A stretch of 64,000 nt of DNA from Rhodosorus marinus CCMP1338 (GCA_029953675.1 JAMWBK010000006.1:620001-684000); one strand, 5' to 3'. Shown: positions 1 to 46,781, counted from the stretch's first letter. The notes: generated from the letters alone by a model not told the origin. Translations and numbers: made by a program.

Positions 1-1223
1 CTCTTGAGATCAGCTGACCTCGTTGCTATCCGAGGAACTGTGCCTGACGAGTCACTAGATTCGCGCAAGATCTGTGACTTTTGAACGCCAGCACCTGATA
101 CTTGCGTATTCCTGGTTTCTATTCTATCGCCCTCAGCTTCTTCCCTCTGCGATGCGCTTGGAGGAGGCTCCCTCTGATTACGTTCAGTTGATAACGGAGC
201 GGCGGATGACGCCATCTGAGACGCTTTGACGTACTTTTCATCAATTTCTTGTCGAAAATTTTCCGCAACTTGGGTGTCGGCAGCTCCATTATTCTGCGCT
301 TGTCTCTCTTTTGTGACCACGGGTCTTCCAAGGAGGTATTGGGTCTCCAGCTCTGGATACTCAGACTCTGCTTCAGCAAGAGATGGTTTAGCACGAAGAA
401 GAAGCAAAGGCAAACCCTCAAGTTGTTGTGGGGCATAGTTCATACCTAAATCTTCGACCGCAATTGGTTCACCATTAGCTTTAATTAAGTCACCATTCTG
501 CTCAGAACCTGATGAAGACATGGCTACAAGTTCGAGCACAGCTCTGTTGCCGTCAAAGGATGGATTCTGCTCGGCTGACCGAAAGGGCTCATCTATCTTG
601 CCCGTTCCGATTCCCATTGTTCGATGGTAGCGTTCTGTCCAGTAGTTGTCTAATTTACCCCGAAACCGGTTCTCCAAAGCCTGAAGGGGTGCAAGCATAG
701 TCGCCACCCCCCTCACAAGCTTTGTCAAACCGAGGCCCTCTAGAACCTCGCGTAACTCCGGATCCTGTTCAATGGGAGTAGGAGATTCCATTTCCACAAG
801 TACGTCACTGCCCCAAACCCACAAGCTTTCGATCATCAGTTGGAGATCATTGTCGGAGCCCGAAATTCGAATGCAGAACCAGAACTTCTTCGGTATGACA
901 ATCTTCCCTGCGAGGGTCTCGAAGCTGTAGCCCAACGTGTCGGGGTCCATTGTGTTTTTACACTCCTCCGAAAGCTTTGCCCACATTGTGTATTGTCCAT
1001 CGAACAAAAGCATTCTACCCTCCTCCGGAACAACTGTAAGGACCTGGCAGTGGAGCACACGCCCAGGTCCATATTTGACTTCCAACCTGAACTCCTCTGG
1101 AGTTAACCTTGTCGCATCGGACCGAGTCGCAACCTCCACAAGTAAACTCTTGATCCATGGCCGCCTAAGTAGCGAAGGATCACGAAATTGCTTTCCAGGC
1201 ATGGTACCACCCCCTCCAACCAT
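1..1223 (-). CDS. TPP1/Est3-like OB-fold protein (putative shelterin/telomerase-recruitment factor); 3' end runs off the window
   Basis: Manual translation gives 407 codons with no stop, from ATG 1223 to the window edge: MVGGGGTMPGKQFRDPSLLRRPWIKSLL...CQVLTVVPEEGRMLLFDGQYTMWAKLSEEC...SFETLAGKIVIPKKF...LQLMIESLWVW...PIEQDPELREVL, then a Ser/Glu/Gln-rich low-complexity tail. Motif order matches the human TPP1 OB fold as remembered (LVLRPWIRELI / GQLLEVL / LLVSDGTHSVRCLVTREA / FRGTEGRLLLL / FYLQVDRFSLL / CNQDLDVQKKL). Confidence 0.75.
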   Translation of the reverse strand, partial: MVGGGGTMPGKQFRDPSLLRRPWIKSLLVEVATRSDATRLTPEEFRLEVKYGPGRVLHCQVLTVVPEEGRMLLFDGQYTMWAKLSEECKNTMDPDTLGYSFETLAGKIVIPKKFWFCIRISGSDNDLQLMIESLWVWGSDVLVEMESPTPIEQDPELREVLEGLGLTKLVRGVATMLAPLQALENRFRGKLDNYWTERYHRTMGIGTGKIDEPFRSAEQNPSFDGNRAVLELVAMSSSGSEQNGDLIKANGEPIAVEDLGMNYAPQQLEGLPLLLLRAKPSLAEAESEYPELETQYLLGRPVVTKERQAQNNGAADTQVAENFRQEIDEKYVKASQMASSAAPLSTERNQREPPPSASQREEAEGDRIETRNTQVSGAGVQKSQILRESSDSSGTVPRIATRSADLK

Positions 1224-1514
1224 GCTCCTTTTTCTATCGATTCCTATCGACGGAAAAAAAAAACCAAACCAAAGCTCCGGGCTCAATCCCTACGATCATC
1301 CACACACGAAGACGAAGCAAAGGTGCTAAACACCTTCAGCTGCGTCGCATCCGTCGAGACCAAACATCATCCTCCGATAACTTGCTTCCCATACAAAGTC
1401 TCAACGGCTCCTCGATTTTCCCACTCCTAAACCCTGGACAAGCACTAGCACCTCATGAAAGCTACATCACAACAAATTTTTCAAATATCGACTCGGTACG
1501 TCGTCGCTTTCAGT

Positions 1515-2870
1515 TCACAAGCACATTGATGTCGTTCCTCCCAAACCGTTCATGAAGGATTGAGACATTGCCTTCTCCTCTTCCAACTCCGAGAGGCGAA
1601 AGGTAGTTCCCGCTAAAACAACTTCCTTCCAAAACCATTTGCTTGAAGGAATTGAGTCATAGCAGTTCCTGTTCCACGCGAGGAAGTTCGTTCTCAACCA
1701 AACCGACGTCCTTTTTGGGGGCAAGAGGAGATGTACTGAGAAATCTATCCATCTCTCTTGCCTGAAATTCGAACCCATCAGCCTTTCCTTCCTTACGTTT
1801 TAGGAATCTCTTGTTCAAAGCTTGGCGCAAACTATCGCGTTGTGGCACATTGCGACTCTGTTCATACGAAACGAAAACGGTTTTTGGTACCTCCAGACAG
1901 TTCATGAAAACGAATGGATCTTTCCGCTTGACAAGCTGGATTCTCTCAGAAGAGACAACAAGATCTTCTCTTACTAAAAGATATCTTAATAGGCGGCAAG
2001 GCCAGTCTCTGCTATCCAGAGACATATCTTGATCCAGAATCGAACCCGCGAGCTTTAAGCTTTGTTGTTACGTTTGAGGGAGAGCTCCTTTGGAAACTCT
2101 ATTTCCGTTTGAAAAGGACGATTTCACTGAACACGTTCTGGGACGAGTTTTCCTCAAAGACTTCTGGTCTTTTCCTCCGCTTTTCATTTTTAGCTTCTGG
2201 TTTTTGGCTTCTAACAAGCGTTGGCCAAGAACGGGTTTGTTTTCAACGTGGAACTTCTGTGTGTAGAGAGAAGCCGTAGTTTGTTCTCAGAGTCCAAGAA
2301 GTCTCGTTTTTCGAGATTGTCTGTGTTTGCCGGGAATCGAACCCGCGAGCTTTTCTAACTGTTCGCGCGTTCAAGGAGCTCTCTTTCCGGCAACCTTTTT
2401 TTTCGCAATCAAAAGAGTTGGATCTCACTCAGAGGGTTTTGGGTACGATTTTGATTTTTTGCTTTGAAGTTGTGAACAAGGTGAGCACGGGGATCCAATT
2501 CACTTCTTAAAAGAGTTGTAATCTTTCCTCCGGTTTTTTTCTTTTGCGTTCTGGGTTGTAGTTTGACTTCGAAGATGCCTATTTTTGAAGGAGAGGGTTC
2601 TAGGTGAGCATCCCTGCAGCAGCTGTGTTTTTTGGGAGGTGGAGAAGCGGAAGTTGGTTCTCTGAAAAGAAGGAAAACAACAGAAAGTGTTTTACTGAAA
2701 TCCCTGCATTGCCCGGAATCGAACTGGAGGTTTTCCTTTCTTACGTTTGAGCAGCGCTTCTGGAAACTTGGGCGCGAAGGAGACGATCTCACTGAAGAAG
2801 TTCTTCACGAACTTTCTCAGTTGCGAAGAAGATGAACGGAAGGAATCGATTCATTTCTTGAAGGATTTCT
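1515..2870 (-). pseudogene. Frameshifted (or mis-assembled) gene built of four degenerate exon-intron repeat units; weak BACK-domain-like motifs
   Basis: Recurring peptides FFSEIVSF..KFPEALLK, LSEIQLF and VFSEIVLF..EFPKELSLK are followed by phase-1 GT..AG introns at 2704-2744, 2321-2359 and 2028-2071; a fourth related phase-1 intron (1757-1796) follows ...NKRFLK. Splicing the last two joins ORFs 1657..2025 and 1515..1778 in frame. Upstream units need 1-nt indels in homopolymer runs and contain in-frame TGA codons. Confidence 0.45.
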
Positions 2871-2990: not shown

Positions 2991-5900
2991 ATGGGGGTTC
3001 CGAGGTTTTACAGGTGGATATCTGAGAGATATCCGTTGATACGGAGGGATGTTGGATTTGGTGAAGGGACACCTACAGTGGATAACTTATATTTGGACTT
3101 GAATGGCGTGATTCACACGGCATCGAGGGCCGATGAGGTGGACAAACCGGTGCTCTCTGAAGAGGACATTTTTCTCAACTCGTTCAAGAAGATAGACGAG
3201 CTCATAGAGATAATTCAACCTACTGAGCTGATCTACTTCGCTGTGGATGGAGTGGCGCCTCGAGCAAAGATGAACCAGCAGAGGTCGAGGAGGTTTCGTT
3301 CTGCGAAAGAGCGCGTAGAAGAAGCTCAGAAGTCAGCAGAGACAGAACTCATCCCTAGCGACAACTACTTCGATTCCAATTGTATTACTCCCGGTACAAA
3401 GTTTATGTTGAGGCTTACAGAAGCTCTAACCTTTTACGCTGAGAAGAAGCTCACGGAGGACGTGAGATGGGAAAACCTCCAGGTCATCGTGTCCGGACCG
3501 AACACACCTGGAGAGGGTGAACACAAGATCATGGAATACATAAGAGAGATGAAGGCTAAGGGAGAACTGGGAAGCAATAAGAGACATTGTTTGTACGGCC
3601 TTGACGCCGATTTGATCATGCTCGCACTGGTTACGCACGAACCGCACTTCATTCTGTTACGTGAAAAAGTAAATATGGGACCGGGCAGCTTTGGCAAGTC
3701 GATTATGCCAAAGCCGCCGAAGGCGACTCAGTCTGGAGCAGGATCGGCTTTGGATTACGAACTGCTTTCCATTGGAGTCTTGCGGGAGTGTCTTGATTCG
3801 GAATTTTCTGGTTTGAAGCTATCGTTTTATGACCTTGAGCGGATCGTTGACGATCTGGTCGTTTTGTTCTTCATCGTTGGCAACGATTTTATCCCACACC
3901 TGCCAGCATTGGACATTGGGGAGGGAGGGCTTGACATGATGCTACGAATGTACAAGCACCTCCTGCCGGGGCAAGGAGGATACATAAACGACAGCGGAAC
4001 AATTAACCTGAATCGCCTGGAGAGAGTGCTTCGAGAGCTTGCGAAGATCGAAGGGGACACGCTTGTAAGACGCAGGGAAATGGCAAAGCAGAAGGGTCGT
4101 GGCGCAAAGCGAATCACGATTGACGATTTGTGGACTGACGATATTCCTGAATTCAAGTCATCGAATCAGCGTCGGACTGCGCCAACTGCTGTAGACTCCA
4201 GACGGCAGGACTTGAAGAGAGTGGCAGATGCTGGCAACTCCGAAAATGAGGACTCCGACGCTTCTGACTTGCTTTCTGATGAAGCACTGATTGACCTCGT
4301 GAACATAGCAGCGCCCGAGAATCCGTTGGATGTCCATTTATCGCTGAGAAAAGCTTACTATGAGGCGAAGTGTGGATTTTCTCCGGACAACATGGAACTG
4401 TTATCCACGAGAGTTGAGGATTATGTTAAAGTTGTTCTATGGACTGTAAAGTACTACTACTGCGGGGTCGTTTCATGGAGATGGTTCTATCCCTATCATT
4501 TCTCGCCAATGCTGGTCGACATGATCAATCTCAGTCGGTACTCGGAGAAGGTGAGAAACTCAGGACCTCGGCGGCACAATGGGTATGTTGCTGCTGCCTT
4601 TGCTGTCTTCGCTGAACAGCTCTTCTTCTTTTTGTTGCGTAGATTACATTTGAACTTGGAGAGCCATTCTTACCCGCGCAACAGCTCATGGCAGTGCTTC
4701 CACCGTCTAGCTCCTGGGCCCTACCTCAGCCGTACAGGAAGCTTATGCTTTCTGAGGAGAGCCCCATAGCAGAGTACTACCCTGTGGATTTCAAGGTGGA
4801 TCTCAACCAAAAAAAGAACGCTTGGGAAGGAGTAGTTCTTCTGCCGTTTGTTGACGAGCGCGAACTGATTTCGGCTATGGATACTGTAAACCCTGAGGAG
4901 CTCTCCGAGGAGGTCAGTCCCCGAAAACGCTCTCTCGTATGGTTTACCTTCGAGACAATAGTTGAGCAAAGTTAGGATCAACATCTACTCTTGTATCGCA
5001 GGAACGTCGCCGAAACACGCCGGCGAAGTCCATTCTGTTGAAGAAAGCTACATCACCGAATAGACCTTCCGAGGACAGGAGGATGGTGAAGTCTCCAATA
5101 CCAAACGTCATGAAGGACTTTCCTGCTGCATCTGACCTCGAAGAGGTGGAACCTGACTTGAACGTTGAGCCTTTCCGTGGTACGTGTTCAAGCTACCAGG
5201 TGTTTCTTGAACACCACCAGTTGGCGACCAACTCTTTCCGGTATCGCTGAGACCTTCTGCACATGGATTCCTTTAGGCCGAAAGCCCGACGGCGTGCTAG
5301 AGCCTGTGAACGACAACGAAACGCTGGGAGGGTGGCCTACGTTGGCCTCCGTGCCATTTTATAGTGCTATCCGACCAATAATGGTCAACCTGTTTGGATA
5401 TCCGAGCAAATACGCCTCGTTTGTCGTCACACCGGGCAACAGGATTGACGAGGACCACGAGCCCACGCCTTTCTTACCATTTCAATCAGTCGATCACGCG
5501 GTATGAACGCTTGTATATCTCAATGGCTTTTTATTGGAACTCGCTGACGTATTCGAGTGTTTCTCTTGCTGGACAGATGAGTTTGGGTCTCAAGCCCGGG
5601 AATAAGGTTCTTGTTGACTACCCCTTCCAGGCTGAAGCCAGGGTTGAGGGTATCATGGACAGTACCACGGTTGTTAGATTCGGCGAGAATGGATCCTTAG
5701 TACGTGAGAGGGTAACCGGGGATCGCTTCCTGGACCTGAAGATGAAAATGATTGAGCGTCAAACGACGGAGAAGGCACTTCGAATGGTGGATAGCACGGT
5801 ATGTTCCTGGTCCCGACCTGGCAGATCCAATCCGAGCCTGTTTACTTGCCTTTCCAGCGTCCGCGCGAAACTGTACGGTTATCACCATGCTGTTGTTTTG

Positions 5901-8141
5901 CTCATCTTGCACTTCTCGTCCACCATGCCAGGTTCTCTGCGATGTCAGACTACCGAAGACCAAGAACCCGGTTACCGGGGACGTGCAAGAGTATAGGGCA
6001 GAAAGCAAGATAGTTGCTGGAGAGCTTCTCATTCCGTGGTACAAACGATCGTCAAAGAGGGAGGTTTCGCAAGACTACGTGCCTGGTCAGAAGGTCCTCT
6101 GTACAGAGAAACTGAATTTCCATGGACGCGTTGGTACAATCCAAAAACTCACAAACGTCGGCGAGGATGAGGGGGAACATGTCGCAGTGGTACTGTACCC
6201 ACGCAAGGCTTGGCACGTGTTATCTGCTTTGGCGAGCCGTTGCGCTGACCGCAACGTCTGTGATTATGAACAGGTTGATTTTCTGATCCCTGTCGCAGCG
6301 AGCACTGAGATTGAGTACTCACACAAAATATTTGAGGCTGACAAGAAAGCAACCTGGTTCTCTCCGGGGGATCTTGGATCATCGCTGAAGATTTTCCCTC
6401 CATTAGTGTCCCGGATCATGGGCAGCCTCCTCGTGTCAATAGCTGAGCCAAAAAAGAAGGTAATAGACGTCGGTCTCGGAGTGAAAAGCCCCAGAATTCG
6501 GTGCTACAAGCCTGGATACGCAAGAAGAGTGGCACCGAAAAGGATGTCCCAGGCTGTAACCGGAGTGATTTATGAGTACTCAGAAGAGGTATGTTGAGGC
6601 GCGGAGATCAGAACCCGCCCAGGAATGTTTCAGTCAAATAGGTTGGTAGTGCTTATACTGAAAAAACAACGTGTGTTGTGCTATTGGCTACTTGAAGACC
6701 AAAAAAATAATGCAGACGTACAAGAAGGAGTTCCCAGAGGTACTAAAGGTGCTTGAGGACTTTATGAAGAAGAACGATTCGCAAGACTCCAAGGACACTC
6801 CAGTCCTGGAACTGATTCCCCCAGGAGGAAATGAGAATGGAAAGGCTTCAGTAGACCTCGCGGTTGTGTCTAGACTTGTTAAGTGGTTGGACTCGCTTGG
6901 CTTGAAGCAGCAGCCACTTTTGCCAGTTGAGTCTCAAGCGGCTTCAAAGGCGACTATCGCGAAGATAGAGCAGTTCACGAAACGTATGCTCCGAAGACAG
7001 AAGGACTTGGTCACAACGATTCGCGAAGATGGCAGCGATTTCTATTTAGCAGCGGGAGCCAACGAAGCCGTTGTGGTGAAATTGAAGAACCTTGAGAACG
7101 GTAGACCATCGACTAGAGGGAAAGCTCCAACTTTCGTGTTGATGGGCGATCGTGTGGTGAACCGGTCCTCAGAAACGGCCGTGCCTTTCGGGGCGAGGGG
7201 AACAGTTGTTGGAATCTTCAACAATGCGAAGGACGCGTATGTGGAGGTCGTGTATGATGAACCCTTCGTTGGAGGAACGTCGCTGAATTCGAGGTGTACG
7301 GAGATGTGCGGCAAGCTGGAGAAACTTTCGAATCTGTTGGTTTTGACGCCAATGAAATGGAGCAAGCAGGACGATCTCAGCAAGGATGAGGACGTCAAAC
7401 CTGCTGAGCAGCTTCCAGCCAGAGGAGGTGATGCAGAGGAGTCTGGCTTTAGGCCGCTTCCTCCCAAGCCACTTCCTCCCAAGCCACTTCCTCCATCAGA
7501 GGAGAGCGCAGCAGAAATCCTTGCAGTGAGCAAGTCCAGAGCTGCAACACCGTCGAAGTCGAAAGCCCGAGCCATGGATAAGAAGGGAGGTACATCTCGA
7601 AGACCCATGGTAGAGCCGCGATCAGCAAACCCGAGCAACAGATCCGATACAGCGCTTGTCGAAGATTTCATCAAAAATGTCACCGTTGTTGATCAAATGA
7701 TCCTGGCCTACTCACCGCCGGCTTCTTCAGGTGATGAATCCGCACCGAACAGCACCAGAAAAGAACGCAGAGCAGCTCAGGCCAGACGCAACAAGAAGAA
7801 GGCGCCGTCCAGAGAAAATTCCGTCGATTTATCTTTGGACGTTTCTCGTAAGCAGAAGAACCGGACGAAAAGCAGCAAGAACGATAGTGATATCGTAGAC
7901 TTTTGGGAGGATCTCCAGAGCGGTCGGAAGAAACCGGGCGTCAAAGCCGGAGGTCTGTCATCATGCAATCTTTCTTTCCCCAGCTGTGTCTACTCTGAGA
8001 CAACTACTAACATAGCTGAACGACGCCATTTCTTTGCCCCCCTCTTCAGTGAGCGAATCATCATCAAAAGATGATTCTAAAAAAACAAGAAAGTCAAGAG
8101 ACCCGAAGAAGAAGCAGGAAAGTCCTGTTCAGGCGGGATGA
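2991..8141 (+). CDS. XRN1: 5'-3' exoribonuclease 1 (multi-exon)
   Basis: MGVPRFYRWISERYP start, DNLYLDLNG, DGVAPRAKMNQQRSRRF, FDSNCITPGT, PGEGEHKIM, YGLDADL, VGNDFIPH, WRWFYPYHFSP. Splicing the intron at about 4552-4642 gives FELGEPFLPAQQLMAVLPP. The C-terminal SH3-like module GDRVVNRSSETAVPFGARGTVVGI is typical of XRN1 rather than XRN2. Inferred last exon ends ...ESPVQAG* at 8141. Confidence 0.95.
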
Positions 8142-18860: not shown

Positions 18861-21690
18861 GCACCACGGCATCCAGCCCACGAAAAACGTAATGGCGCTG
18901 TGGAACCTACTCATCATCATCCGCGGCGGTATAGGCCTTGAGAACCAGTGAATCCGTGCACTGAAGTTGCTCTTAAATTCACCCCACAGGTAGCTTGGAT
19001 GGCAGACCCGATTAAAATTCCATAAAAGACAACCCCTTGTCCATGCATGAAGTATTGTTCCCTTTCATCGCCTGACCCACACAAACGAATTTTTTGCCGT
19101 ATTTTCGACTATCAGTACCCCCAGCTCAGTATGACCGTCAATCTTTCACCCCAACACAGTAGCAAAAGTTTCATTGGACAATGCCTTCAAAAGCCAATAT
19201 TTATAGACTTTGATTGGTTGAACGCGACCGCAGTTTTTCCACAACCAAAAACGAAGAATATTCTCAGGAATTAAATCTTCCTTTTTGGTATGGTTTTGGA
19301 GGGGGGGGGGGGTTCCACCACCGCAGGACGGGTTGCACCACTCTGAGGCTTTCACTTGCAAGCGCTCAGAACAGACGATAAATAATTTCAATTCATATAT
19401 ATTCATGGAATGCCGTCCTACAGACAATTTAGAAGGTAATAGCGCCAAAAACATATGAAAAATAGAGCCCAAGAGGGCTTCTATTTGTTTTCTGTTCCGT
19501 ACTGAAATCCTCGAATTAGTCTTCTCATCCAAAACAAATAGACTAAACAATCAGGCCCATGACGAAAGTGGGCGGAACCCAGAGGCTTGGCTTGGAAAAC
19601 ATAGGTGAAAATGTGACCCCCCCCCCCTGCTTTTCCTTTTTACAATTTTCATGGCACAATATGCAAATAATATTTGGAAATACAATATATAATGATTGGA
19701 GACGTAATTTGGTTTGTAACCTCAAATGCAAGCTGGAAGGATGCTACGAATTCCTCTTTTTTTTGGGGGGGGGGGGTGGTTGTTGGGATTAGAAAGTTAG
19801 GTTTCAGTTTCTTGGGCTCGAATAGCAATTCGAGGCAGAGAAATTTATAGTTTGCGTTTGGTTTGCTCTGAAAGATGGTTGTACGTATAGCCAATGAAAT
19901 AGTGACAAATAGAAAAAAGGGGCTATTTCGGTTCTGCAGACACGAACCGGCGCTTCGAATTATGGACACCTCTCAAAATTACTTTTTTTTCCCGCTTGTT
20001 GTATATTTGTTTGAAGTTTATCAGAGGGGGGGTCGTATTGAAAGAAAGATGTTCCGTCCACGTGGAAAGCAATTGAAATATTTCAAAAGCATTGATATCT
20101 GGTTAACGGGTGATGATATATGGGGTCCCATCAAGACACCCTACCCTGTAGGGTGTCTTGTCCCTATGACAAGCAATACCTTTTGAAGAGACTTGTACGA
20201 AAGTCGTTGGTTAAAGAAAGTCCTCTTGCTGCGAAAATTTGACCAAACGCTGTCACATGGTTGTCCCTGTAGGCAGCCGAGGGGTGGGTTAAGAAACCTT
20301 TTGCCTTTTTTTAGAAAATGATAAGTATAGTTAATACATTTTTAGAGAGCACTGCTCTTAGTGACTCTTTGTCTTCAGCAATAAAAAGTAATCGAGTTTG
20401 CCTTCTCAAAATATTTCGAAAATCCTTCCTTTTTTCGACATTTTTTTCAACAAAAAGGACGGTCGGTCCTCCCCCGAAACCCCTCGTCCTCTCGGATTCC
20501 CCCTCCCTCCCCTTCCGTTCAAACAAGCCGAAAATACATGTCTACGTGGAAGCAACCAAGTAGCAAAAATTAGCTTAAGACGGAAAGTTACCATCTGCTT
20601 CCAGGTCCCTTACGATTCTTGTGAAGAAATGATTCTCGTAGATATTCAAAAACGCTCACTCTTTTGGTTAAGGACAACCCCTAGGAAACTTGATGGAGTT
20701 CATAGCGATTCACCATTTTTACGTTTGCCGTTTCTAAAATGGAAGGTAGTGCGTTCCAATAATACGGACCACGGCGGGACTCATACTTTTGCAACCATTT
20801 AGCCCTCTAGATACTTTTTAAAATGAAAGAAGTGGTACCACCCTCGTCTTTCAATTGTATTCAGTCCCCTGGAAACCCGAAAACTGCAAGGCACAAGTAA
20901 AAGGGAAGGAAAAACGTATCCATGTTTTCTAAAACTCCTGGGACGGTTTAGCGTCTAAACTTGCAGAAAGCGCTAGCCTTAGAAGGGGGGTAGATGAACT
21001 AAGCAACCAAAAACGCGTACGACGAAGTTTAATAGCAATACAACGGCCGGGGATGGATACTCAACCTTTCCCCTTATTATGTGAAAATAGTAAAAGATAT
21101 ATTGAAAAATAGTGACTTTGCGGTACCCCTCGTGTCAAGCAAGACAATACTCCCCCTCTTTAGGATTAGCTAGGAATGGGCTTTGTACGTCTTCCAAGGG
21201 GTGAACAATATTAACGTTCATATCGGGTGGGGTAGTAGTAGTCCGATCATTGCCCTAGATCTGTTGGCTGGGGCCCACCCGTACAAGCCTACCTGTTGTA
21301 CACTGTGCGATGTACTGATATTTACGATATATGCTGTAATTATTGGATTATTATTCGTCGGACAATCACAGTATACGAAAAAGGCTTTCTCCAGACCCCC
21401 TAAGATATGCATTCACCACCAGCGCGCAAATATTTCTAAAGCCCCTGGTGACGGGTAAAGATGAAGCAGAAAATTGGCATATTGAGCAAAAGAGTAGATG
21501 TGAGGGTGGGTATTTTGTTCTTGCTTTGTTTTTATTTCGCTTTGCAGTTTTGCTGTTATAATTTCGATGGAAAAGGGTGGGTTATTCTTAAGCGTATTTA
21601 GGTCTAGTCGAAATGTGTGAGGATGCGTGTGGTAACAGATATGTGCGAAACGACGTTTTATAAGAGCAGCAAACGGATGAACTGGAGTCA

Positions 21691-22485
21691 ATGATGCCGG
21701 GGCAGAGGGGCCAGAGGAGGCAAAGGAGTACGTGGAGAAGTGAGATGGCGAAGGACGTGAGACTTGGGGTACAAATGGACGTTGAGAAGAGCGACAATAT
21801 GTCGCAGATAACAGAATCTCAATCATCTGATGTGACTGGATATGGGAACTTTGCTAGTGGCGAGCACGTCACGATTTGGAACAAACAGGAGAAACGGAAG
21901 ATTGCTGGTAATGCAGCGCCTCTAGGGAAGAACCTCACAAAGTACTTGGGCAAGCATCCCGAATGTGAAGTTTACAACGGGCAGGATTCTAGGGAAGGGA
22001 TTAGGAACAAGAATAATCCGCATGGGAGGACTGAGGCATCTGGACTAGGTGTTCATGTTCCAATTTGGAATAGGGAAGAAAAGAGAAAAATTGCCGGTAA
22101 TGCTGCGCCCCTTGCAAAGAACCTCGTTATGTATTTAGCCAGACATCCGGACTGCGAAGTTTACGATGGTCAGGACAAAGAGGACGGAGGCAGAGGGTCG
22201 AATAGGAATCAAACGGTGCAGAAGCGATCCGTTCCAGTCCCCGTACCTGCCCAAGATCAGTGGATGCCAAACGACTATTTGGAGTTTGATCTTGATCAAG
22301 AGGAAATCGAGGAAATTGACGCAATATTTGGATTTGGAGATGCGAAAGAGGATGCGATGGATATGGAAATGGTGACGGTGGAGATGATCGACTTCGATTC
22401 TGGGATGGACTTTTCGCCAAGCTGTTTGCTTTCCTTTGGACCGGTTTCTCCTCCTCATTTCGACATGTCTGTACATGTCGAGTAA
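21691..22485 (+). CDS. Stand-alone protein with two BRK-like domains and an acidic tail
   Basis: Internal repeat [43 protein letters not shown] (21859-21987) and [43 protein letters not shown] (22048-22176). It resembles the BRK consensus (V.V.N...G..L.G..AP....L..WL..HP.Y.V). Confidence 0.75.
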
Positions 22486-28380: not shown

Positions 28381-31300
28381 ATGGGATTTGTGGTTGGATT
28401 AGGGGACCGGACATATAGCGCCGTCAGGGGAAACGGGCAGCGGAGATGTGTAAAGCCGATATCGGTTTCCTGCCGCTTAAAGGTTCGTGATAACCCGATT
28501 GATTCCTTGGATTCTTTAGGTCCTGTTTTTTTCGCCTTGTTCTGGGTTTTTCCACGAAGTCGTGTTTGGGTTGGGTCTGATATGGCGTGTTGTTCCTATG
28601 TTGTCTTTGTTCTTGTCGTGAATACAGGATTCAACTGCCTGGGAGAGATTCTGTGAAAGCAACTCGGATAAGGAAACAGCATCAAGCGGATCGGGTGAAA
28701 GGAAGAACGGATCACCCAATTTTGAGCAAGAGGAGCCATCTCGTAGTTCCCCGCTCCCTGTGGTTTTGGCGGCAGTTGGACTGTCGTTGGCGATCACGTT
28801 CAACCCCCTGTCGGATCGGTCCGCTTTGGCAGGGGAAGTTGCCGCGCCCGTCCAGGTAGACCCGGCCGCTGCAGTCAGCCCAGCTGCCCCTGCCCCTGCA
28901 TCTGCATCTGAACCAGAACCTGCACCTTCACCTGCACCTGTAGAAGAACCACAGGGTTTCTTTACAAACGACATGGAGCTCGTTAAAGTAGTTAAGAAAG
29001 CCTTTGCAAGCAAGGAGCAGCAGCTCTTGCAGGCTGCAGGCATGACCGAAGATGGAACAGTTCTTATTGAGGTTTCTTCCTCGTTCAAGGACCTCTCTAT
29101 ACAAAGGCAGCAAGAAGTTACGGACAAGGCACTCAGCTTGGTGAGACCTCTTGGTTATACAGCTCTTCAAGTGATGGAAAGCGGAAGCGGCGAGACCCTG
29201 GCGATGACCGGGCTCAAGGTAAAGTTTGGAGAAGATGCTAGGATGTTATCAGTCGAGAACCAGAAGCTGCAGAACGCTTTAGCTAAGGAAAAGGCCTCTA
29301 CCAGCAGCCTCCAAGGCGACAAGGTTAAGATTCTTGAGGAGCTTGACCAGATGAATGCCGAGCTCGTGAGGAAATTGGCTAGCTACGAACGTCTACTCAA
29401 GGGTGAAGAGGCCGAGGTTGCGAGGCTTAAGGTGGAAGCCGAGGATCTCAATGAAGAGCTGAGTGATGCGGACAATCGAATGGCCCTGCAGGCAAAGGTT
29501 CAACAAGAGATGAAAGTCACTAATGAATATGAGACCGCGGTGATGATTATGAAGGGTCAAGTCCTAAAAGCATCGGAAGATCTCGCCCAGGCGAAGAACA
29601 ATCTAGCGAGGGTGCAAGCGGAAACTGTGGCCATGGACAAGAAAATTACCGAGGTTGAACAAACTGGAGAGAAACAGCTGGAGCAGGCAGGGGTCGAGGG
29701 GAAGCGCATCATAGAAGAACAAATAGAAGTTGCTAGAGCTGAATATGCCCCTCAACTTGCACAGCTTGCCAGCACTCGAGAAAAAGTACAATCCGGTATC
29801 AGCGGCCTTGAACAGGACACTGGGCCTCGCATAAAGGAATTCGAGGAACAGCTCAAACGAGAAAAACAAAAGATGATCGCCGAACAACAGAAGAGGGTCC
29901 AGGATGCGAAGATGGAGAAGGAAACCCGACTGGAAAATGAAAGGAAGGCCAAGGAGGCTGCCGAAAAGGCCGAGAGAGAGAGGCTAGAAGCAATTGAGAA
30001 GGAGAAGAGAGCGAAAGCGGAGGCCGCAGAAAGGGAGGAGAGAGAGAAACGAGAAGCCGCTGAGAGAGAAGAGAGAGAGAGACGAGAAGCCGCCGAGAGG
30101 GAAGCTAAGGCGAAACGAGAAGCCGCCGAGAGGGAAGCAAAGGCGAAACGAGAAGCCGCCGAGAGGGAAGCAAAGGCGAAACAAGAAGCCGCCGAGAGGG
30201 AAGCAAAGGCGAAACAAGAAGCCGCCGAGAGGGAAGCAAAGGCGAAACAAGAAGCCGCCGAGAAGGCTGAGAGAGAGCGACGCGAAGCTGCCGAAAGGGA
30301 GGCAAAGCAAAAGCAGGAGGCCGCTGAAAGGGAGGAGAGAGAGCGACGGGAAGCTGAAGAAAAGGAGGAAAGAGCTCGACAGGCTGAGCTGCGTGCAGCC
30401 GAGGAGGCAAAGGTGAAGGCTGAGAAAGAACGCCTTGCTCAAGAGGCAGCTGCTGAGAAACAGAGACAGGCTGAGCTGCGTGCTGCGGAAGAGGCGAAGA
30501 TGAGGGCCGAGAAGGAGCGCCTTGCTAAGGAAGCAGCTGCTGAAAAGCAGAGGCAAGCTGAGCTACGTGCTGCTGAAGAAGCAAAGATGAAGGCCGAAAA
30601 AGAACGGATCGCTCAAGAACAAGCCGCTGAGAAGCAGAAGCAAGCAGAACTGCGTGCTGCTGAACTTGAGAGGGCGCGAGTAGAGAAAGAACGAAGAGCT
30701 GAAGAGGCTGCTGCGGAAAAGGAGAGATTGAGAGTCGAAAGGGAGAAGAAGGCTCAGGAGGCCGCTGCCGAGAGGGAAAAATTGAGAGCAGAGAAGGAGC
30801 AGAAGGCTAAGGAGGAAGCGGCTCTGAGGGAGCAGCAGAGGCAAGAGCAACTGAAGATCGCTGAAGAGGAACGAAAAGCAAAGGAAGATGCTGCCCAGAA
30901 AGAGAAGGAAGCTCAGATACGCGCTGCTGAAGAAGCGAGGCAGGAGAAGGAGAGACAGGAGCAAGAGAAGGCCGCCGTGCAGGAAAAGATCAGAGCAGAA
31001 AGGGAGCAAAAAGCTAAGGAAGAGGCAGCTGAGAGGCAGCGGCAAGCTGAGCTGCGGGCCGCCGAACAAGAAAAGATCAGAGCAGAAAGGGAGCAAAAAG
31101 CTAAGGAAGAGGCTGCCGAGAAGCAGCGGCAAGCTGAGCTTCGGGCTGCCGAACAAGAGAAGATCAGAGCAGAAAAGGAGCGAAAAGCTAAGGAAGAGGC
31201 TGCCGAGAAGCAGCGGCAAGCTGAAGAACGGGCTGCCGAACAGCAGAAGATCAAGGAGGAAAGAGAAAGAGCTGCGCAGGAAGCAGCTGCCGAGCGGGAG

Positions 31301-31684
31301 AAGCAAGCTGAGCTGCGGGCAGCTGAAAAGGAACGAATTGCTCAAGAGCGCCAGGCCGAGAAGCAAAAGATGGAAGCGGAGAAGGCCGCTGAAAAAGAAA
31401 GGAAAGCACAGGCTGAGAAGGAACGCCTAGCGCAACAGCAAGCAGCGGACGAAACTGAGGAACAACCAGCTCCACCGGAAAGGTCTGGAGCTTGGAAACG
31501 AATGTTTGGCAAAAAGGCTGCTGGTGAGGTGGGAGCAAGAGACGATGCCGGTGCCGACCAAGAAGCGGAAGTGAAAACAAGGGGGAACAGGCGGCAGGCA
31601 GGACTCGACAGCGGGAGCCCAGCTTCAGCAGATGGTCCTTTAAGGTCACGGTTTCTCTCCCTTTCTTTCTTGCGCCGCTAGGTG
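28381..31684 (+). CDS. ~1,000-aa plastid-targeted coiled-coil / single-alpha-helix protein, probably thylakoid-directed
   Basis: Exon 1 MGFVVGLGDRTYSAVRGNGQRRCVKPISVSCRLK (transit-peptide-like) splices in phase 0 to DSTAWERF..., which is in frame with ORF 28760..31681. A hydrophobic segment plus AxA site (PVVLAAVGLSLAITFNPLSDRSALA-GE) precedes a coiled coil and about 500 aa of E/K/R/A/Q repeats. A probable short final intron starts at about 31644. Confidence 0.8.
30086..30250 (+). repeat. Five tandem 33-nt coding repeats (EAAEREAKAK[R/Q])
   Basis: Unit gaagccgccgagagggaagc(t/a)aaggcgaaac(g/a)a starts at 30086, 30119, 30152, 30185 and 30218. Three ~87-nt (29-aa) repeats also occur at about 30980-31240. 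Confidence 0.9.
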
Positions 31685-39968: not shown

Positions 39969-42900
39969 TCATGGTCCCTTTCCGGATAATCCAGAGAGGG
40001 CGAGTGTGGTTAGCTTCGCGTGAGACCGTACTGCCTGTACATGTATAGGCCATCTTGGTTGCCAGGCATCCAATGGCCAACAAGGAGGCGTTCCTACCGC
40101 ACAAAGATCGTAAAGATTCTTGGCCAGATACATCGTCACAGCTCGAGCATCAGCACCGTCAACTTCTGGTCGTTTGTCTAGGTCCGCAACTCCAAAGTGA
40201 CTGTAGAGACGAACTCGAAGCACTCCAGACCGTGAGTCCGTATCAGCAAGCGTTCTTGGCGAGCGCAGAATGTAGGCGGCGGCCTCCGAGCCCCCGCAAC
40301 CGCTTTCAGGTATGGCTACAAGCAGGTCTCTTTGGCGAGTGGCGGATTGAGAGGTCTCCTCACTTGGCAGCGGAAGTATACGGAAATACTGGTCCTCGTC
40401 CAACTCAAGTAGGGAAACAGAACGAAAGACTTGCACAAAGTCCTGCTGGAACTTGTCCGGATGAAATCCAAGTACCGGTCTGTTCTCTTTCCCAGAGTTC
40501 CCAAAACCCTCAGTTTCGTTCATCTGCTTCACCTCTGGAGGAAACCGCCGACACAAAAGAGTTTCGGATTCCTCGGTTGTGGTTTCCAAGACCTTCCTTA
40601 TAACGAAGTCCCAGTCCTCGCATTCACTTGCGTGCAAACGTCCAAGTTTCGATATAACTACACCCAGGGCGCGCACGTAAGGCAGGTGCCAGCGTTGTCC
40701 CCTACCCAGCATCAAGCTGAAATATACCCTTCTAATTTGACGCCCAGTATCCGCCGCACAAGAAAGCGACGCTACGTCAAGAAATTCTCCTCTACAATCT
40801 GTCCAAGCGTAGGAGTATCTTTGAGTTTCTGGACAGTACTTGTAGCACAGGTGCAACAGCATGTCGCCAGGGTTGCTTTCTGTTCCTTCACTTTGCTTCC
40901 CCACCCCAGTAAGGGTCATAGCCGGTTCGTAAAGGGATGAAACTATAGAAGCCTCTTGCACGGCGGTGGAAGCCAGGGATGCGAGGTTTGCCGGAGGAGA
41001 CCACTCTTCCACAGCTGAATTACTAGCACTGTTATGCTTTGCTGTTGGCAAGTTGCCAGCAAGGCTCATACCTGCGTATTCTGGCGTCACAGGCGACCAG
41101 AATTCAATCTGCTCATAGCCCATGCTCTTGCTTGTATGATGTCTTGTCCCATCGTCCTTTGCCGATACTGTCTTCGATCGAAGCATGTTGTACACAGAAA
41201 ATGCATAGCTTTTGATCAACTGGGCCCGAACAGGCCATCGGTTTGTGTCCATGACACCTTCGGAAGGCGGCCGAAGCAGCTCTTGAGGCAGTATCTTCAA
41301 CTGGAACCGTCGAACACCACCTATCAACGAAGGTATCAACTCCCCGTCAGCATCGACAGCGGGAGACAGTAGCGAAGCCAGTGAGCGGATGAGAGCTCCA
41401 AGCCTCTTGTCATCACGAAATCTCACAGGAGGAATCACGTAAACTACAAAGTTCTCCTCGACTTTTCGATCTCGTTGAGCAGTCATCTTAGCTGCACAAG
41501 ATGAGACTTCCATTCTGTACGCGTCAATAATTTTAGCGTATGCGCCCATGTCCGCAGTCCCTAATTCCTCAGCTTGCATGCCTAAACAGTCAACGTAGAG
41601 GAAACCACTGCCTGCAAGGACCTGGTGCTTGCCAAGAGAGCATTCCTGATACGATGTCTTGAGATCGCGAAAAAATCTCTCCGACTCCTTGTCCAAATAG
41701 GAAGGCGCGATGACACCGAAGACTACATACTTCTCGTCACTGAAAGGCTCAAGGCAGGCCTTCTCCCAAAACGGTATAATACAGTTGCTCGTTTCGATCA
41801 AGTCTCCGCGAAAGCCAGTGCAAACTTGTGGCGGGTCCAGAACTGTTACCGAAAATGGTTTGCTGTCGATGCCCACAGGCCCTTGTATCTCAATCCTCTT
41901 CGACTTAGAGCTACCCAAGTTCCGGCACGAATACATGTCCTGAAAGATCTTGTTAATCTTCGCCAGCGTTCTTCTCACAACCCCAAGCGGCAGGCTCAAT
42001 GAATCCTTCTCAGCCGGCGACGACACGAGCTCATCTTCCACCACATTACGTCCTACCACTTGCATATCGACTAAGCGGAGGATATCAGTGAGTTCAGTGT
42101 TTGACGGCATGGACAAACTGCTTGGTGACTGGGAGAATTCTATGCAGTCTTCAGCAGGCTCAGAGACAAGCCCAGGAACGTTCTGAAGTACCACTGACAA
42201 GCTCGCACAATCAACGGGCACAGAGCGACTGAGCGATTTTTCCTGGCCAGTCTTCGTCTCGTTGGGAACAAAGGTTACACCCCTAGGTTTTTCAGCTTCA
42301 GATTTGACAGGGACAGAAGCCTTGTCCTCCGCATCCAGCATGCTTTTAACTCCGTTTTCCGCGCTCGGGGCATCCATGTCCGTCCTCATCTCCCCAAAGT
42401 TTTCGAAATTCTTCCTCGGAAAATACACGTTTGACAACGGACGCATACCACCTGCAACACCACTTCTCGACACCTCACTTCGCAGGCGGAGAGGAGCACT
42501 TCCGACTTCCTGAACAGTAGCATGACTTTCTTGCTTATTCTCGACATATTCGTCATTCTTAGCCATGTGAATACCATAGACTCCGAAAGCTTCGTCAACA
42601 AACGCATTGAGTCCTTTAGCGTTTAGGAACGCGTCCTTGGAAATGGGAATCGATTCGCCGTCTCGCTTCTGGTCCAAAACTTTCGCTTCCGATCCCGAGG
42701 GATCATCTCTTGGTCGCTTCCGCGAGTTTGCATCGTTGGTTTGGTCGACTGCAGAACCTTCTCCTTCCACGTTCTCTCCTGTACTCTCTGCAGACTGCTC
42801 CACGCCCCCTTCATGTTCAACGAGAATTGATTTCGTCGGAAAAGGGATCATTGACCCATCTTGGAGTTCCACATACACAGCTTTCCTCAAGACATCATCG

Positions 42901-43715
42901 ACATCTGTTTCGTCGACATCGTCACCAGCGGCAAAATCCATAACGGAACCGATCAGCCCCGCCTCATGCCATCTTCTAACCACACTATCCGCGAGACTCT
43001 GGCCTATACCCTCCGAAGAACACAACGTTCCTCTCACTCCGCTTGGTGACATTGAAACCGGCGAACCGTCGAGTTGCTCAACATCCTGCACACGCAGGGA
43101 GGAAAAAAGGCTCCTTTCCACTGAAACCTTCGCACCCACGGCATTTGCACTCCCCGTACTCAGAAACGTATCCACGTAGAGCAGAAAGGAGTCACTACCG
43201 TCATTAGTTGACAATACCAGCGACCTTTCGAGGCGCAAACAACCATGCCGCAGCAAAGCTCTCTCAAGCATGAACTTCACAGCTCTGCACAGCGACTTTC
43301 CAATACGATTTCGACCGTCCTTGGCGGGAACCTTTTCGGGAGCAGAGGACGACCAGAAACCAGTTTCTATTCTCGTTAATACACCCTTTACAATCGCATC
43401 AAGACCAGCTATGTCCACGGTCTCCGATGATATGCCGAAAACACACAGTTCACCGCCATCACCATTACCTCGCGTCTCCCATGACGCTATGAGCTTATGC
43501 TCATCAACAAGCATTGCAGCAGCCGCCCCAAGAATGGCCCCATGAGTGACCAAGTTATCTATATACTTTATCCTATCAGCAAGTGGAGAGCTCTCTCGAC
43601 TTCTGAGAGGGTCCCTCCCCACAGGCAAATTGTAAACAGCATACTGAACAGAGTCAAACCCTCGTATTAGGAACGTATTGCTGATCAGGTCATTATAAGA
43701 ATGATCCGTGTTCAT
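39969..43715 (-). CDS. MED13: Mediator subunit 13 (intronless, ~1,248 aa)
   Basis: IIPFWEKACLEPF, FFRDLKTSYQECSLGKH, LYEPAMTL, LHLCYKY...YAWTDCRGEFLD, VISKLGRL...ECEDW and a terminal WPIHV, in MED13 motif order. Confidence 0.85.
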   Translation of the reverse strand: MNTDHSYNDLISNTFLIRGFDSVQYAVYNLPVGRDPLRSRESSPLADRIKYIDNLVTHGAILGAAAAMLVDEHKLIASWETRGNGDGGELCVFGISSETVDIAGLDAIVKGVLTRIETGFWSSSAPEKVPAKDGRNRIGKSLCRAVKFMLERALLRHGCLRLERSLVLSTNDGSDSFLLYVDTFLSTGSANAVGAKVSVERSLFSSLRVQDVEQLDGSPVSMSPSGVRGTLCSSEGIGQSLADSVVRRWHEAGLIGSVMDFAAGDDVDETDVDDVLRKAVYVELQDGSMIPFPTKSILVEHEGGVEQSAESTGENVEGEGSAVDQTNDANSRKRPRDDPSGSEAKVLDQKRDGESIPISKDAFLNAKGLNAFVDEAFGVYGIHMAKNDEYVENKQESHATVQEVGSAPLRLRSEVSRSGVAGGMRPLSNVYFPRKNFENFGEMRTDMDAPSAENGVKSMLDAEDKASVPVKSEAEKPRGVTFVPNETKTGQEKSLSRSVPVDCASLSVVLQNVPGLVSEPAEDCIEFSQSPSSLSMPSNTELTDILRLVDMQVVGRNVVEDELVSSPAEKDSLSLPLGVVRRTLAKINKIFQDMYSCRNLGSSKSKRIEIQGPVGIDSKPFSVTVLDPPQVCTGFRGDLIETSNCIIPFWEKACLEPFSDEKYVVFGVIAPSYLDKESERFFRDLKTSYQECSLGKHQVLAGSGFLYVDCLGMQAEELGTADMGAYAKIIDAYRMEVSSCAAKMTAQRDRKVEENFVVYVIPPVRFRDDKRLGALIRSLASLLSPAVDADGELIPSLIGGVRRFQLKILPQELLRPPSEGVMDTNRWPVRAQLIKSYAFSVYNMLRSKTVSAKDDGTRHHTSKSMGYEQIEFWSPVTPEYAGMSLAGNLPTAKHNSASNSAVEEWSPPANLASLASTAVQEASIVSSLYEPAMTLTGVGKQSEGTESNPGDMLLHLCYKYCPETQRYSYAWTDCRGEFLDVASLSCAADTGRQIRRVYFSLMLGRGQRWHLPYVRALGVVISKLGRLHASECEDWDFVIRKVLETTTEESETLLCRRFPPEVKQMNETEGFGNSGKENRPVLGFHPDKFQQDFVQVFRSVSLLELDEDQYFRILPLPSEETSQSATRQRDLLVAIPESGCGGSEAAAYILRSPRTLADTDSRSGVLRVRLYSHFGVADLDKRPEVDGADARAVTMYLAKNLYDLCAVGTPPCWPLDAWQPRWPIHVQAVRSHAKLTTLALSGLSGKGP

Positions 43716-44621
43716 CACGGCCTCTTCACTTCCGCATCATGCAGGGCTTGAAAGAAATTTTTAGAGGCTCTGAAACCCGAAAACCCCAACTCCAAAGACC
43801 GAAACGGACAGCAGCCCCACGCCTTTCAGCGCCAACCCCCCACCCCCACCCGCCAATAATAAAAAACACCCACACCAAATCACCCGCAACTGGTCATTTA
43901 GCTTTTGGATAAGATCCTTCCAGAGCCAACTATCATTCCATACCTTCTCTCTCCTAAATTTGCTTCCTCTTTCCCCTTCAAGCTTCTCCTCCGGATCCCT
44001 ATCCTCTCCTTACTCCTCCCCCCCAAAACGAAGAATCCGCCAAGTCATTTTCTCTTTTTCTATTGACCCACAAACAAAAGCCACTCTTTTCGAGCAGAAA
44101 AATAGGAACACTCACTAATCCGCTGAAAAACATCATGTTTTTAATATATAGAGTATCATGGACCATAATAGGCCTCAATCCATTGTCCTTACAAAGATTA
44201 CTAAAATTCATCGAATCTTTGCGACCACTTTTTCTTCTTCAATCGCAGCGAAAGGATGGATCCTTGACAACTCATTTTTAAGATCACTAGTTGGTTTAAT
44301 TAAGATATTTCGTCGTAAACTATTCATAAAAAAGAATATTTTGGTTCATCTAGAAGAATTTTGAAGATTTAGAGGTATTTTTGGGGATGCTGAAATCGGG
44401 ATCTATGTTTCTGGTTGGGCTTGGGGAGTGGGACTGCTGGCGGTAGAGGTAGAAGAGGATGGATCTACGAGGGTTTTGATCAGAGACACGATCACGATTC
44501 ACGATCGAGAATAAGTACACTTCGAGCGCATTCCTTATCCTGAGAAGAAGCTCCGGTGTTTGCTTCTCTTGCGGCTGTCTGCGAGTGAGTGCGTCTTTGT
44601 GGGACCCTGGTGGCTGATCCG

Positions 44622-45852
44622 ATGATCGCTTTCGTGGGGTCAGTGGGATCGTGGAATGACAGGGTTGTTTCCTATCGGAACGGCGTAAACAGACTTTCAT
44701 CTGCTGGAAGAATCCAATATCAACGCAAGCCAAGTCGTGATCGAGTAAGATGCTGCGTCGAGGGCAACGCGGAGAAACGGGGTGTTTCGCACACGACTGC
44801 TCAGGCCCTCGATCACGCAACCAATCTGTTCCCTCTGTGGGTTTTCTCATCAGCAATGATAGGAATTGCAGCTCCGCAAACGATTCTTTGGTTTCAAGGA
44901 GGCTGGGTGTTCTGGACACTGTCCCTGATAATGCTGGGAATGGGTTTGACCCTCCCCATAGATGAGTTTGTCGTGGCGCTGAAGACCCCTCAGAACGTTA
45001 TCATTGGAGCAGCAGCTCAGTTCGCAATCATGCCGTTACTCGGACTCACGATTGCGAACGGACTTCAGTTGCCCACACCGTATTTGTTGGGGCTCGTGTT
45101 GGTCTCGACCTGTCCTGGAGGAACTGCGTCCAACCTTGTATGCCTACTGTGCGGAGCGAATGTTTCCCTCTCCGTGCTGATGACCACAGCGACGACGCTG
45201 CTTTCAGTGTTCATGACTCCATTCTTGCTGAAGGTTCTCGTCGGGCAGGTGGTCCCTATAAACGCAGCTGCTCTGATGCTAAGTACTTCTCAGATCGTGT
45301 TGCTACCGCTCGCAGTAGGAATCTTCATGCAGAGGTCCGCACATTTTCCTCTATAACAGCCCATGTTAGTTCGCCCAATCCGCTTGCTAACCCTCACTCG
45401 TCTTGCACAGGTTTGTCCCCAAGCTCGTCAAGGCGATCGAGGTCTTTCTTCCTTTCTCTTCAGTTCTGGGAGTATCGGCAATTTGCTCAAGCATTGTTGC
45501 CATGAATCGGGACATGCTTTTGAAATCTGGTCCAAAGCTTCTCTTGGCAGTACTTCTTCTGCATTTCTTCGGCTTTCTACTGGGCTACCTGTTCGGGCGA
45601 ACCATTGGGTTTAGCGAGAAGGACTCGCGCACAGTTTCCATTGAAGTTGGAATGCAGAATTCTGGTTTAGGTGCTGTACTTGCTCAGCTGCACTTTGCCA
45701 ATCCACTGACATCTGTTCCTTCAGCAATTTCCGCAACTACGCATTCCATACTGGGGAGTACGCTTTCGGCCTTCTGGCGCCTTACGGATCGGAGAAAACA
45801 GAGACTAGCAGAGGAGCGTGAGAATCGAAGTGGGGTCCCCACTAGTGCCTAG
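44622..45852 (+). CDS. Plastid sodium/bile-acid (BASS-family) symporter, 2 exons
   Basis: Transit-like MIAFVGSVG, TNLFPLWV, IMLGMGLTL, AQFAIMPLLG, TCPGGTASN, TVSIEVGMQNSGLG, VPSAISATTHSILGS. Intron at about 45342-45409. Confidence 0.92.
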
Positions 45853-46670: not shown

Positions 46671-46781
46671 GATCTTGGCCGCTCGGTCTGCATAAGGAGC
46701 AATAGTTTATAGCGTGAAACTGGGAGAGTGCAAGTGTGACCAGAGATGGACGTCTTATGAGCTTTGGCATCCAGTCTATCC

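Follow-up and report, generated by a model that had tools for sequence, protein, structure and literature searches.

In animals and fission yeast, TPP1 links telomerase to POT1, which binds single-stranded telomeric DNA. TPP1 (ACD) and its orthologue in Schizosaccharomyces pombe, Tpz1, which couples an N-terminal oligonucleotide/oligosaccharide-binding (OB) domain to a long partner-binding C-terminal region, make this bridge through the TEL patch of the OB domain. The TPP1/ACD family also holds, more remotely, Est3, a subunit of telomerase, and TEBP-beta/p50; in structure, TEBP-beta of ciliates and Tetrahymena p50 and Tpt1 fall in this one family of OB proteins at telomere ends, which pair with a POT1-like subunit, and on the 3' overhang TEBP-beta is the partner of TEBP-alpha. 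To our knowledge, every member of this fold family that has been characterised (TPP1, Tpz1, Est3, TEBP-beta and p50) acts at telomeres or on telomerase. Here we describe a gene at the left edge of a 64,000-nucleotide stretch of DNA (the window; positions 620,001-684,000 of contig JAMWBK010000006.1) from the red alga Rhodosorus marinus. On sequence comparison we give a probability of roughly 0.7 to the combined statement that this is a nuclear gene, that the N-terminal ~130 residues of its product form a divergent homologue of the TPP1/ACD OB domain, and that the product is a telomere-end adaptor.

The source assembly, GCA_029953675.1, is the 31-Mb nuclear genome of R. marinus (Stylonematophyceae), with several telomere-to-telomere contigs and 8,392 BRAKER gene models trained on RNA-seq (PMC10250338). 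A short-chain dehydrogenase gene that lies intact in the window maps to its contig JAMWBK010000006.1, and the red-algal host that the initial annotation proposed from the DNA is therefore correct. That annotation had also pointed to an unbroken minus-strand frame of 407 codons from an ATG at position 1223, absent from the list of open reading frames for lack of a stop within the window. Translation of positions 1-1223 bears this out: the frame begins MVGGGGTMPGKQFRDPSLLRRPWIKSLL and reaches the window edge without a stop, and it is missing from the lists solely because it runs off the window. Upstream, the closest in-frame stop lies 23 codons from the ATG, with no intervening ATG. Contrary to what had been supposed, the gene is not hidden, since GenBank holds a called gene that starts exactly at window position 1223 on the minus strand and has a product of 827 residues with no Pfam family on record. 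DNA retrieved from past the window edge carries the frame on without a stop, to 696 codons in total, 289 more than in the window, and ~1.26 kb of the gene lies past the left edge. The 827-residue product fits a single exon, and the gene is an annotated, domain-less model that only the window edge had obscured.

1..1223, minus strand: first 407 codons of the single-exon gene (codons at 3..1223), from the translation, the called gene and the reading of the retrieved DNA (L005)
1224..1577, minus strand: probable 5' untranslated region of at least 354 nt, from the alignment to a relative's contig (L001) and the in-frame stop 23 codons upstream of the ATG

The 827-residue product of this gene was absent from the results of a word-indexed protein search though the gene is on record, and the missing self-match is thus not evidence of an unannotated gene.

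The closest relative in a collection of 5.8 billion proteins (P0001, 86% identical) is encoded on L001, a 2,886-nt JGI contig with a poly-A run at its end, which is collinear with window positions 1577..1 at 86% nucleotide identity and without intron-sized gaps. This contig looks like an mRNA of a related Rhodosorus strain or species, and its poly-A tail and contig type suggest that the sample was a culture transcriptome. The initial annotation had tied its proposal to a transcript over the frame, and this collinear poly-A contig from a relative supplies one. It also supplies the full C-terminus of the relative's protein, which, together with the 696 open codons of the genome, is what the proposed extension beyond the window has yielded. 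At about position 1173 of the contig, corresponding to nucleotide 801 of the coding sequence in the window gene, a single 1-nt gap breaks the frame, owing to which the gene caller split it into proteins of 358 and 391 residues. The break is probably an assembly error because the homologous frame downstream is still conserved with R. marinus, and a truncated protein in the relative was dropped as an explanation for the same reason.

Comparison of the window gene with this contig by the Nei-Gojobori method gave a ratio of nonsynonymous to synonymous substitution rates (Ka/Ks) of 0.29 overall. The ratio is 0.13 for residues 8-145, 0.33 for residues 146-215 and 0.45-0.47 in the tail, and the N-terminal domain is thus a constrained, functional core under strong purifying selection. 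Given the called gene, the collinear poly-A contig and the low Ka/Ks, the frame is not a chance one; it marks a genuine gene under constraint, with transcription seen in a relative.

The family to which the gene belongs is small. Searched exhaustively with phmmer, 1.84 billion representative proteins yielded two relatives only, P0001 and a protein of 245 residues, P0002, which is 35% identical over residues 8-140 (E = 1.8e-17) and sits on a 7.1-kb contig from SRA run SRR22824290. A profile search of 5.8e9 proteins recovered P0002 alone again and no new members, nor did two scans of metagenomes, which used different conserved blocks, add any relatives. Neither relative has a precomputed Pfam domain in the protein collection. 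All three sequences share an invariant core consisting of P-W-I, H-C-Q-V, D-G, A-K-L-x-x-E-C and V-W-G, together with its longest block, D-P-x-x-L-G-Y-x-F-E-T-L-x-G-K-x-x-I-P.

The open reading frame of P0002 (positions 124-897 of its contig, L003) stops at 245 residues, soon past the OB-like domain, and is followed in another frame by an S/T/A-rich open reading frame of 275 residues (1121-1948). The latter may be the tail of the same gene, separated by an intron or a frameshift, and the C-terminal ~90 residues of P0002 may be intron read-through.

Similarity to the TPP1 OB domain

The link to TPP1 is clearest in P0002. When this protein was compared with the Protein Data Bank (PDB) using phmmer, the human TPP1 OB domain was found at E = 3.2e-05 (26.9 bits, bias 0.0); TPP1 entries fill ranks 1-7, and the following match has E > 1. 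Pairwise BLASTP of P0002 against the human TPP1 OB domain gave E = 6e-09, the two being 24% identical across 106 residues, and the Pfam family PF10341 (Shelterin complex subunit TPP1/ACD) matched at E = 7.6e-05 (23.0 bits, positions 2-105 of the 158 in the hidden Markov model). The corresponding domain of P0001 matches PF10341 weakly (E = 0.29, 11.4 bits). PF10341 is the only plausible Pfam family, and the sole match for two of the three family members.

A family profile built from the three N-terminal domains was searched against 177,635 distinct PDB sequences. Seven TPP1/ACD OB chains lead the result, with 7tre_C at E = 0.01 and 2i46_A at E = 0.013, and the hmmsearch alignment to TPP1 covers 107 collinear positions from RPWI on. 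Aligned by hhalign to a profile of seven mammalian TPP1 OB domains, the red-algal profile scored 30.9 (P = 2.6e-4) over 112 columns, query positions 18-134 falling on template positions 2-118. None of 300 column-shuffled query profiles reached this score (12.6 +/- 2.6, maximum 21.8), which lies ~7 standard deviations above them, and the reversed profile scored 9.3. As a yardstick, TPP1 and Est3, an accepted pair, score 24.4 (P = 0.0032) by the same procedure; the human TPP1 OB sequence had been verified against 2i46_A and that of Est3 against 9swn_C. The similarity to a bona fide TPP1 OB domain is hence significant and specific for the family, and without significance for the window sequence alone. 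TPP1/ACD, the identity first proposed, is the only family that any profile method found, and no other OB family or fold came out on top of the profile searches. We regard true homology of the family to TPP1 as very probable on these alignments.

The motifs listed in the initial annotation are all present and in the order given: RPWI at residues 21-24, QVLTV at 60-64, LLFDGQY at 72-78, MDPDT at 92-96, LAGKIV at 104-109, LQLMI at 127-131 and QDPEL at 153-157. We took their pairing with TPP1 from the hmmsearch, hhalign and P0002-PDB alignments. R21-P22-W23-I24 falls on R96-P97-W98-I99 of TPP1, and L72-L-F-D75-G76-Q-Y78 on L-L-V-S-D148-G149-T-H151, the final position being H in both P0001 and P0002. 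A82-K-L-S-E-E-C88 follows opposite C-L-V-T-R-E-A. D93-P-D95-T-L-G-Y99-S-F101 pairs with D166-W-E168-E-K-E-F172-G-F174, G106-K107-I-V-I110 with G179-R180-L-L-L183, and L127-Q-L-M-I with F-Y-L-Q-V, whereas the pairing of I-E-Q-D-P-E-L-R with C-N-Q-D-P/L-D-V-Q appears only in the greedy hhalign setting. Five of the six blocks thus lie where they had been placed, as does the acidic loop MDPDT, which all three alignments set opposite DWEEKE of TPP1. The exception is QVLTV, which aligns to the disordered beta1-beta2 loop of TPP1 and not to a strand; EEFRLEV takes the place of TPP1's first strand. The signature motifs of TPP1 (R/Q-P-W-I where the domain begins, the DG-x-H turn linking beta2 to beta3, and G-R/K at the start of beta4) are present and invariant or nearly so in the family. 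The features of the protein within the window are as follows.

789..1178, minus strand: TPP1-like N-terminal domain with a predicted OB fold, residues 16-145, the most constrained part (hmmsearch, hhalign, Ka/Ks)
1152..1163, minus strand: RPWI motif at the domain start, residues 21-24, aligned to RPWI of TPP1
960..1010, minus strand: block LLFDGQYTMWAKLSEEC, residues 72-88, aligned to LLVSDGTHSVRCLVTREA of TPP1
891..947, minus strand: DPDTLGYSFETLAGKIVIP, residues 93-111, a nearly invariant family block opposite the TEL-patch loop and strand of TPP1
810..845, minus strand: LQLMIESLWVWG, residues 127-138, predicted last strand (hhalign to FYLQVDRFSLL of TPP1; AlphaFold2 strand 126-137, low confidence)
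579..767, minus strand: closing helix QDPELREVLEG, residues 153-163, and conserved helical segment, residues 164-215 (low-confidence AlphaFold2 helices)
3..578, minus strand: start of the long S/E/Q/T-rich tail, residues 216-407 (translation; no Pfam domain; Ka/Ks 0.45-0.47)

P22, W23 and I24 are invariant in all three family members, as is VWG in the segment of residues 127-138. The TPP1 counterpart of residues 72-88, LLVSDGTHSVRCLVTREA, takes in the DG turn, beta3 and the first part of the helix that follows, and this is the sole block that also aligns to Est3 (IRDSSHQILVEFSQEC). We take the human TEL patch for binding of TERT to consist of E168, E169, E171, R180, L183, L212 and E215. Its character is kept at four positions, with D95 (E in P0002) at E168, K107 at R180, I110 at L183 and D140 at E215, the last by hhalign, and it is exactly on the TEL-patch loop and strand of TPP1 that the red-algal family has its most invariant block.

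Past the OB-like domain, residues 146-215 are conserved and predicted, at low confidence, to be helical, with AlphaFold2 helices at 155-163 and 167-203; the greedy hhalign setting extends collinearly into QDPDVQKKL and GLSLSQLL of TPP1, and the segment of residues 164-215 is a candidate partner-binding region. The long S/E/Q-rich tail that had been noted after the domain is seen in the translation as residues 216-407; it is probably disordered, and past the window edge it turns to acidic repeats of TEQTER type. Neither the 696 residues read from the genome nor the C-terminal portion encoded by the relative's transcript showed any further domain.

The repeats, imperfect and hexapeptide-like (TEQTER, TGQTER, AERTEQ), occupy positions 19641-20507 of the retrieved DNA, corresponding to ~619,136-620,000 of JAMWBK010000006.1, and the relative has a similar, shorter array.

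Proposed role and competing readings

The protein is TPP1/Tpz1-like in architecture and unlike the single-domain Est3, with a predicted OB domain at the N-terminus, a short conserved helical region and a long, probably disordered tail. Because of this architecture, and because members of the fold family act at chromosome ends, a telomere-end adaptor is the best-supported reading, and we infer from the homology that the domain adopts the OB fold, that the protein binds telomerase and POT1 and that it localises to telomeres. In such an adaptor, telomerase would be recruited or stimulated through contact of TERT's N-terminal domain with the part of the OB surface that surrounds the conserved DPxxLGYxFETLxGK loop and strand; the helical segment past the OB domain would bind a POT1-type single-strand telomere-binding protein, and the disordered tail, acidic and finally basic, may serve other contacts or nuclear targeting. 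For the functional part taken by itself, an adaptor at telomere ends that recruits telomerase, homology points to a chance a little better than even. Several observations weigh against the reading as a whole, and they favour different alternatives.

The best surviving of these is that a domain descended from TPP1 has been repurposed without a telomere role, its OB surface serving a different partner in some other adaptor and the acidic repeat tail a new role. The TEL patch is conserved only in part, as two of its three acidic positions, E169 (here T96) and E171 (G98), are not kept, and the post-OB region (residues 146-215) is not detectably like the POT1-binding region that directly follows the OB domain in TPP1, the comparison being not significant at P = 0.12. 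The family is also tiny and fast-evolving, with its two relatives among 1.84e9 representatives, and the TEQTER repeat tail has no counterpart in TPP1. The same patch tells against repurposing in that the most conserved red-algal block stands exactly opposite its loop and strand, the OB-like domain is strongly constrained with a Ka/Ks of 0.13, and it is established that every characterised member of the fold family works at telomeres or on telomerase. We therefore consider repurposing unlikely.

It is less likely still that the similarity to TPP1 is coincidental and that the domain is an unrelated, lineage-specific beta-rich fold. The window protein alone gives no signal: it has no Pfam match even at E <= 10, BLASTP against the human TPP1 OB domain returns E = 52, and against the PDB it finds chance matches only, such as a T4 capsid protein at E ~1.5. 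The PF10341 check that had been proposed gives a significant match for P0002 and none for the window protein, and the scores of all three family members, P0002 included, lie below the 26.5-bit gathering cut-off of that family. The hhalign probability is 43%, with both profiles shallow. Nor is there a usable structure model, since AlphaFold2 gave a mean predicted local distance difference test (pLDDT) of 41.9 from the single sequence and 34.8 with the three-sequence alignment, from which TPP1 sequences had been deliberately excluded to avoid circularity, and the OB fold stays a prediction. Foldseek of the models against the PDB returned nothing significant (best E 0.085, template-modelling score ~0.17), with TPP1 chains at ranks 8-13, likewise not significant. 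What stands from the proposed modelling check is the order of elements, which at a pLDDT of 35-42 is a helix, strands 56-65, 70-74 and 79-83, a helix at 86-91, strands 114-119 and 126-137 and a helix at 155-163; the order beta-beta-beta-alpha-beta-beta-alpha is compatible with an OB fold, in which a five-stranded barrel has helices at its N-terminus, between beta3 and beta4 and at its close, and from residue 70 on these elements coincide with the aligned elements of TPP1, if the boundaries of the latter are as we presume. Finally, the assignment is transitive and runs through one bridging sequence, P0002. The chain is sound because the window protein and P0002 are linked at E = 1.8e-17 and P0002 and TPP1 at about 1e-5 by two methods. 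The Pfam model, phmmer against the PDB and the family profile against the PDB all reach TPP1 only, over the same ~105 collinear residues; the hhalign score stands well clear of the shuffles and the HMMER bias of 0.0 leaves no compositional bias to account for the match, so that coincidence seems improbable.

OB folds are hard to distinguish by sequence and one PDB match is labelled "CST complex subunit STN1" (8soj_B), yet an OB fold of another family (RPA, CST with Stn1/Ten1, or RMI1) is most improbable, since at E <= 10 neither Pfam nor the two PDB searches gave any entry for RPA, Stn1, Ten1, RMI or SSB, and 8soj_B was rejected as a fusion chain, its matched residues 282-386 falling in the TPP1 part, which the human TPP1 OB domain itself matches at residues 283-436 with E = 2.3e-100.

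Returning to the telomere-end adaptor, the protein is apparently, by its sequence, a new and divergent member of TPP1/ACD and the first in Archaeplastida, within a known family rather than a new kind of system. That a TPP1 orthologue is recognised here for the first time in Archaeplastida, with the invariant DPxxLGYxFETLxGK surface as a red-algal TEL patch that contacts TERT, we would put at even odds. A protein of this kind is not known to have been reported from plants or algae. In the literature searched we found no paper linking TPP1 with red algae, and reviews of plant telomeres assign recruitment to TRB proteins or POT1a. The initial suggestion that the gene could seed searches for a plant counterpart is weakened, as neither of the two relatives found by phmmer is recognisably from plants; its value for plants is limited because the family is small and fast-evolving and a single-sequence search gave no plant relatives. 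If the assignment is true, the origin of the TPP1 family would predate the split of Archaeplastida from other eukaryotes, and the protein would provide a profile to start from and a group of conserved surface residues with which to study the recruitment of telomerase in algae.

Surroundings of the gene

The divergent neighbour of the TPP1-like gene, beginning at 2991, is XRN1. It and the other neighbours listed here are ordinary eukaryotic housekeeping genes, none of them telomere-related.

2991-8141, plus strand: XRN1, 1,451 residues, spliced
21691-22485, plus strand: BRK-domain protein
39969-43718, minus strand: Mediator subunit Med13
44589-45356, plus strand: SBF-family transporter
46764-48089, plus strand: TAF1A-like TPR protein
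50371-51474, plus strand: Utp21/WDR36

Between the TPP1-like gene and XRN1, the intergenic DNA carries two exact 20-nt copies of AAAGCTCGCGGGTTCGATTC on the minus strand, at 2037-2056 and 2334-2353, 297 nt apart, and a weaker copy at 1766-1785. It is similar to the T-arm of a tRNA or to a Pol III B-box (GGTTCGAnTCC), with two matches against 0.06 expected by chance. Neither ARAGORN nor Rfam finds a tRNA at these boxes, which could be tRNA-derived relics, a short interspersed element, halves of a permuted tRNA gene or TFIIIC sites. Further along, an open reading frame of 973 residues without a Pfam domain, probably a repetitive coding region of low complexity, occupies positions 28760-31681 (plus strand), in the part of the window where strand composition is most extreme (at 30-32 kb, GC skew is 0.25 and AT skew is 0.47).

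Comparison with known systems

The ciliate proteins TEBP-beta, p50 and Tpt1 gave no sequence match at E <= 10 in the PDB searches. No OB chain of Tpz1 surfaced there either, and the likeness to Tpz1 is one of general architecture. Two sequence elements are shared with Est3 of Saccharomyces cerevisiae (2M9V, 9SWN), QPWIK close to the N-terminus and the block D-x-x-H-x-[IM]-x-x-x-[FL]-S-x-E-C. Est3 is a single-domain telomerase subunit of 181 residues, compared with 827 here, and the red-algal profile scores 21.7 against it by hhalign (P = 0.011), inside the shuffle range (maximum 23.9). With a product of this length, a score within that range and only the DG-H...S-EC block aligned, membership in Est3 was rejected.

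The comparison with human and mammalian TPP1 (ACD; 2I46, 7TRE; PF10341) goes further. Identity is just ~18-24%, and a predicted strand of ~15 residues (VLHCQVLTVV) occupies the position of the disordered loop of TPP1. No POT1-binding or TIN2-binding motif is detectable in the red-algal protein, and its tail consists of acidic TEQTER repeats. Against these differences, the N-terminal domains are collinear over ~110 residues, from the RPWI start through the LL-x-DG-x-H/Y turn, S/T-x-E-C/A and the G-K/R-hydrophobic strand to the closing QDP helix, and the two proteins share the same layout, with the OB or OB-like domain first and a long low-complexity tail after it.

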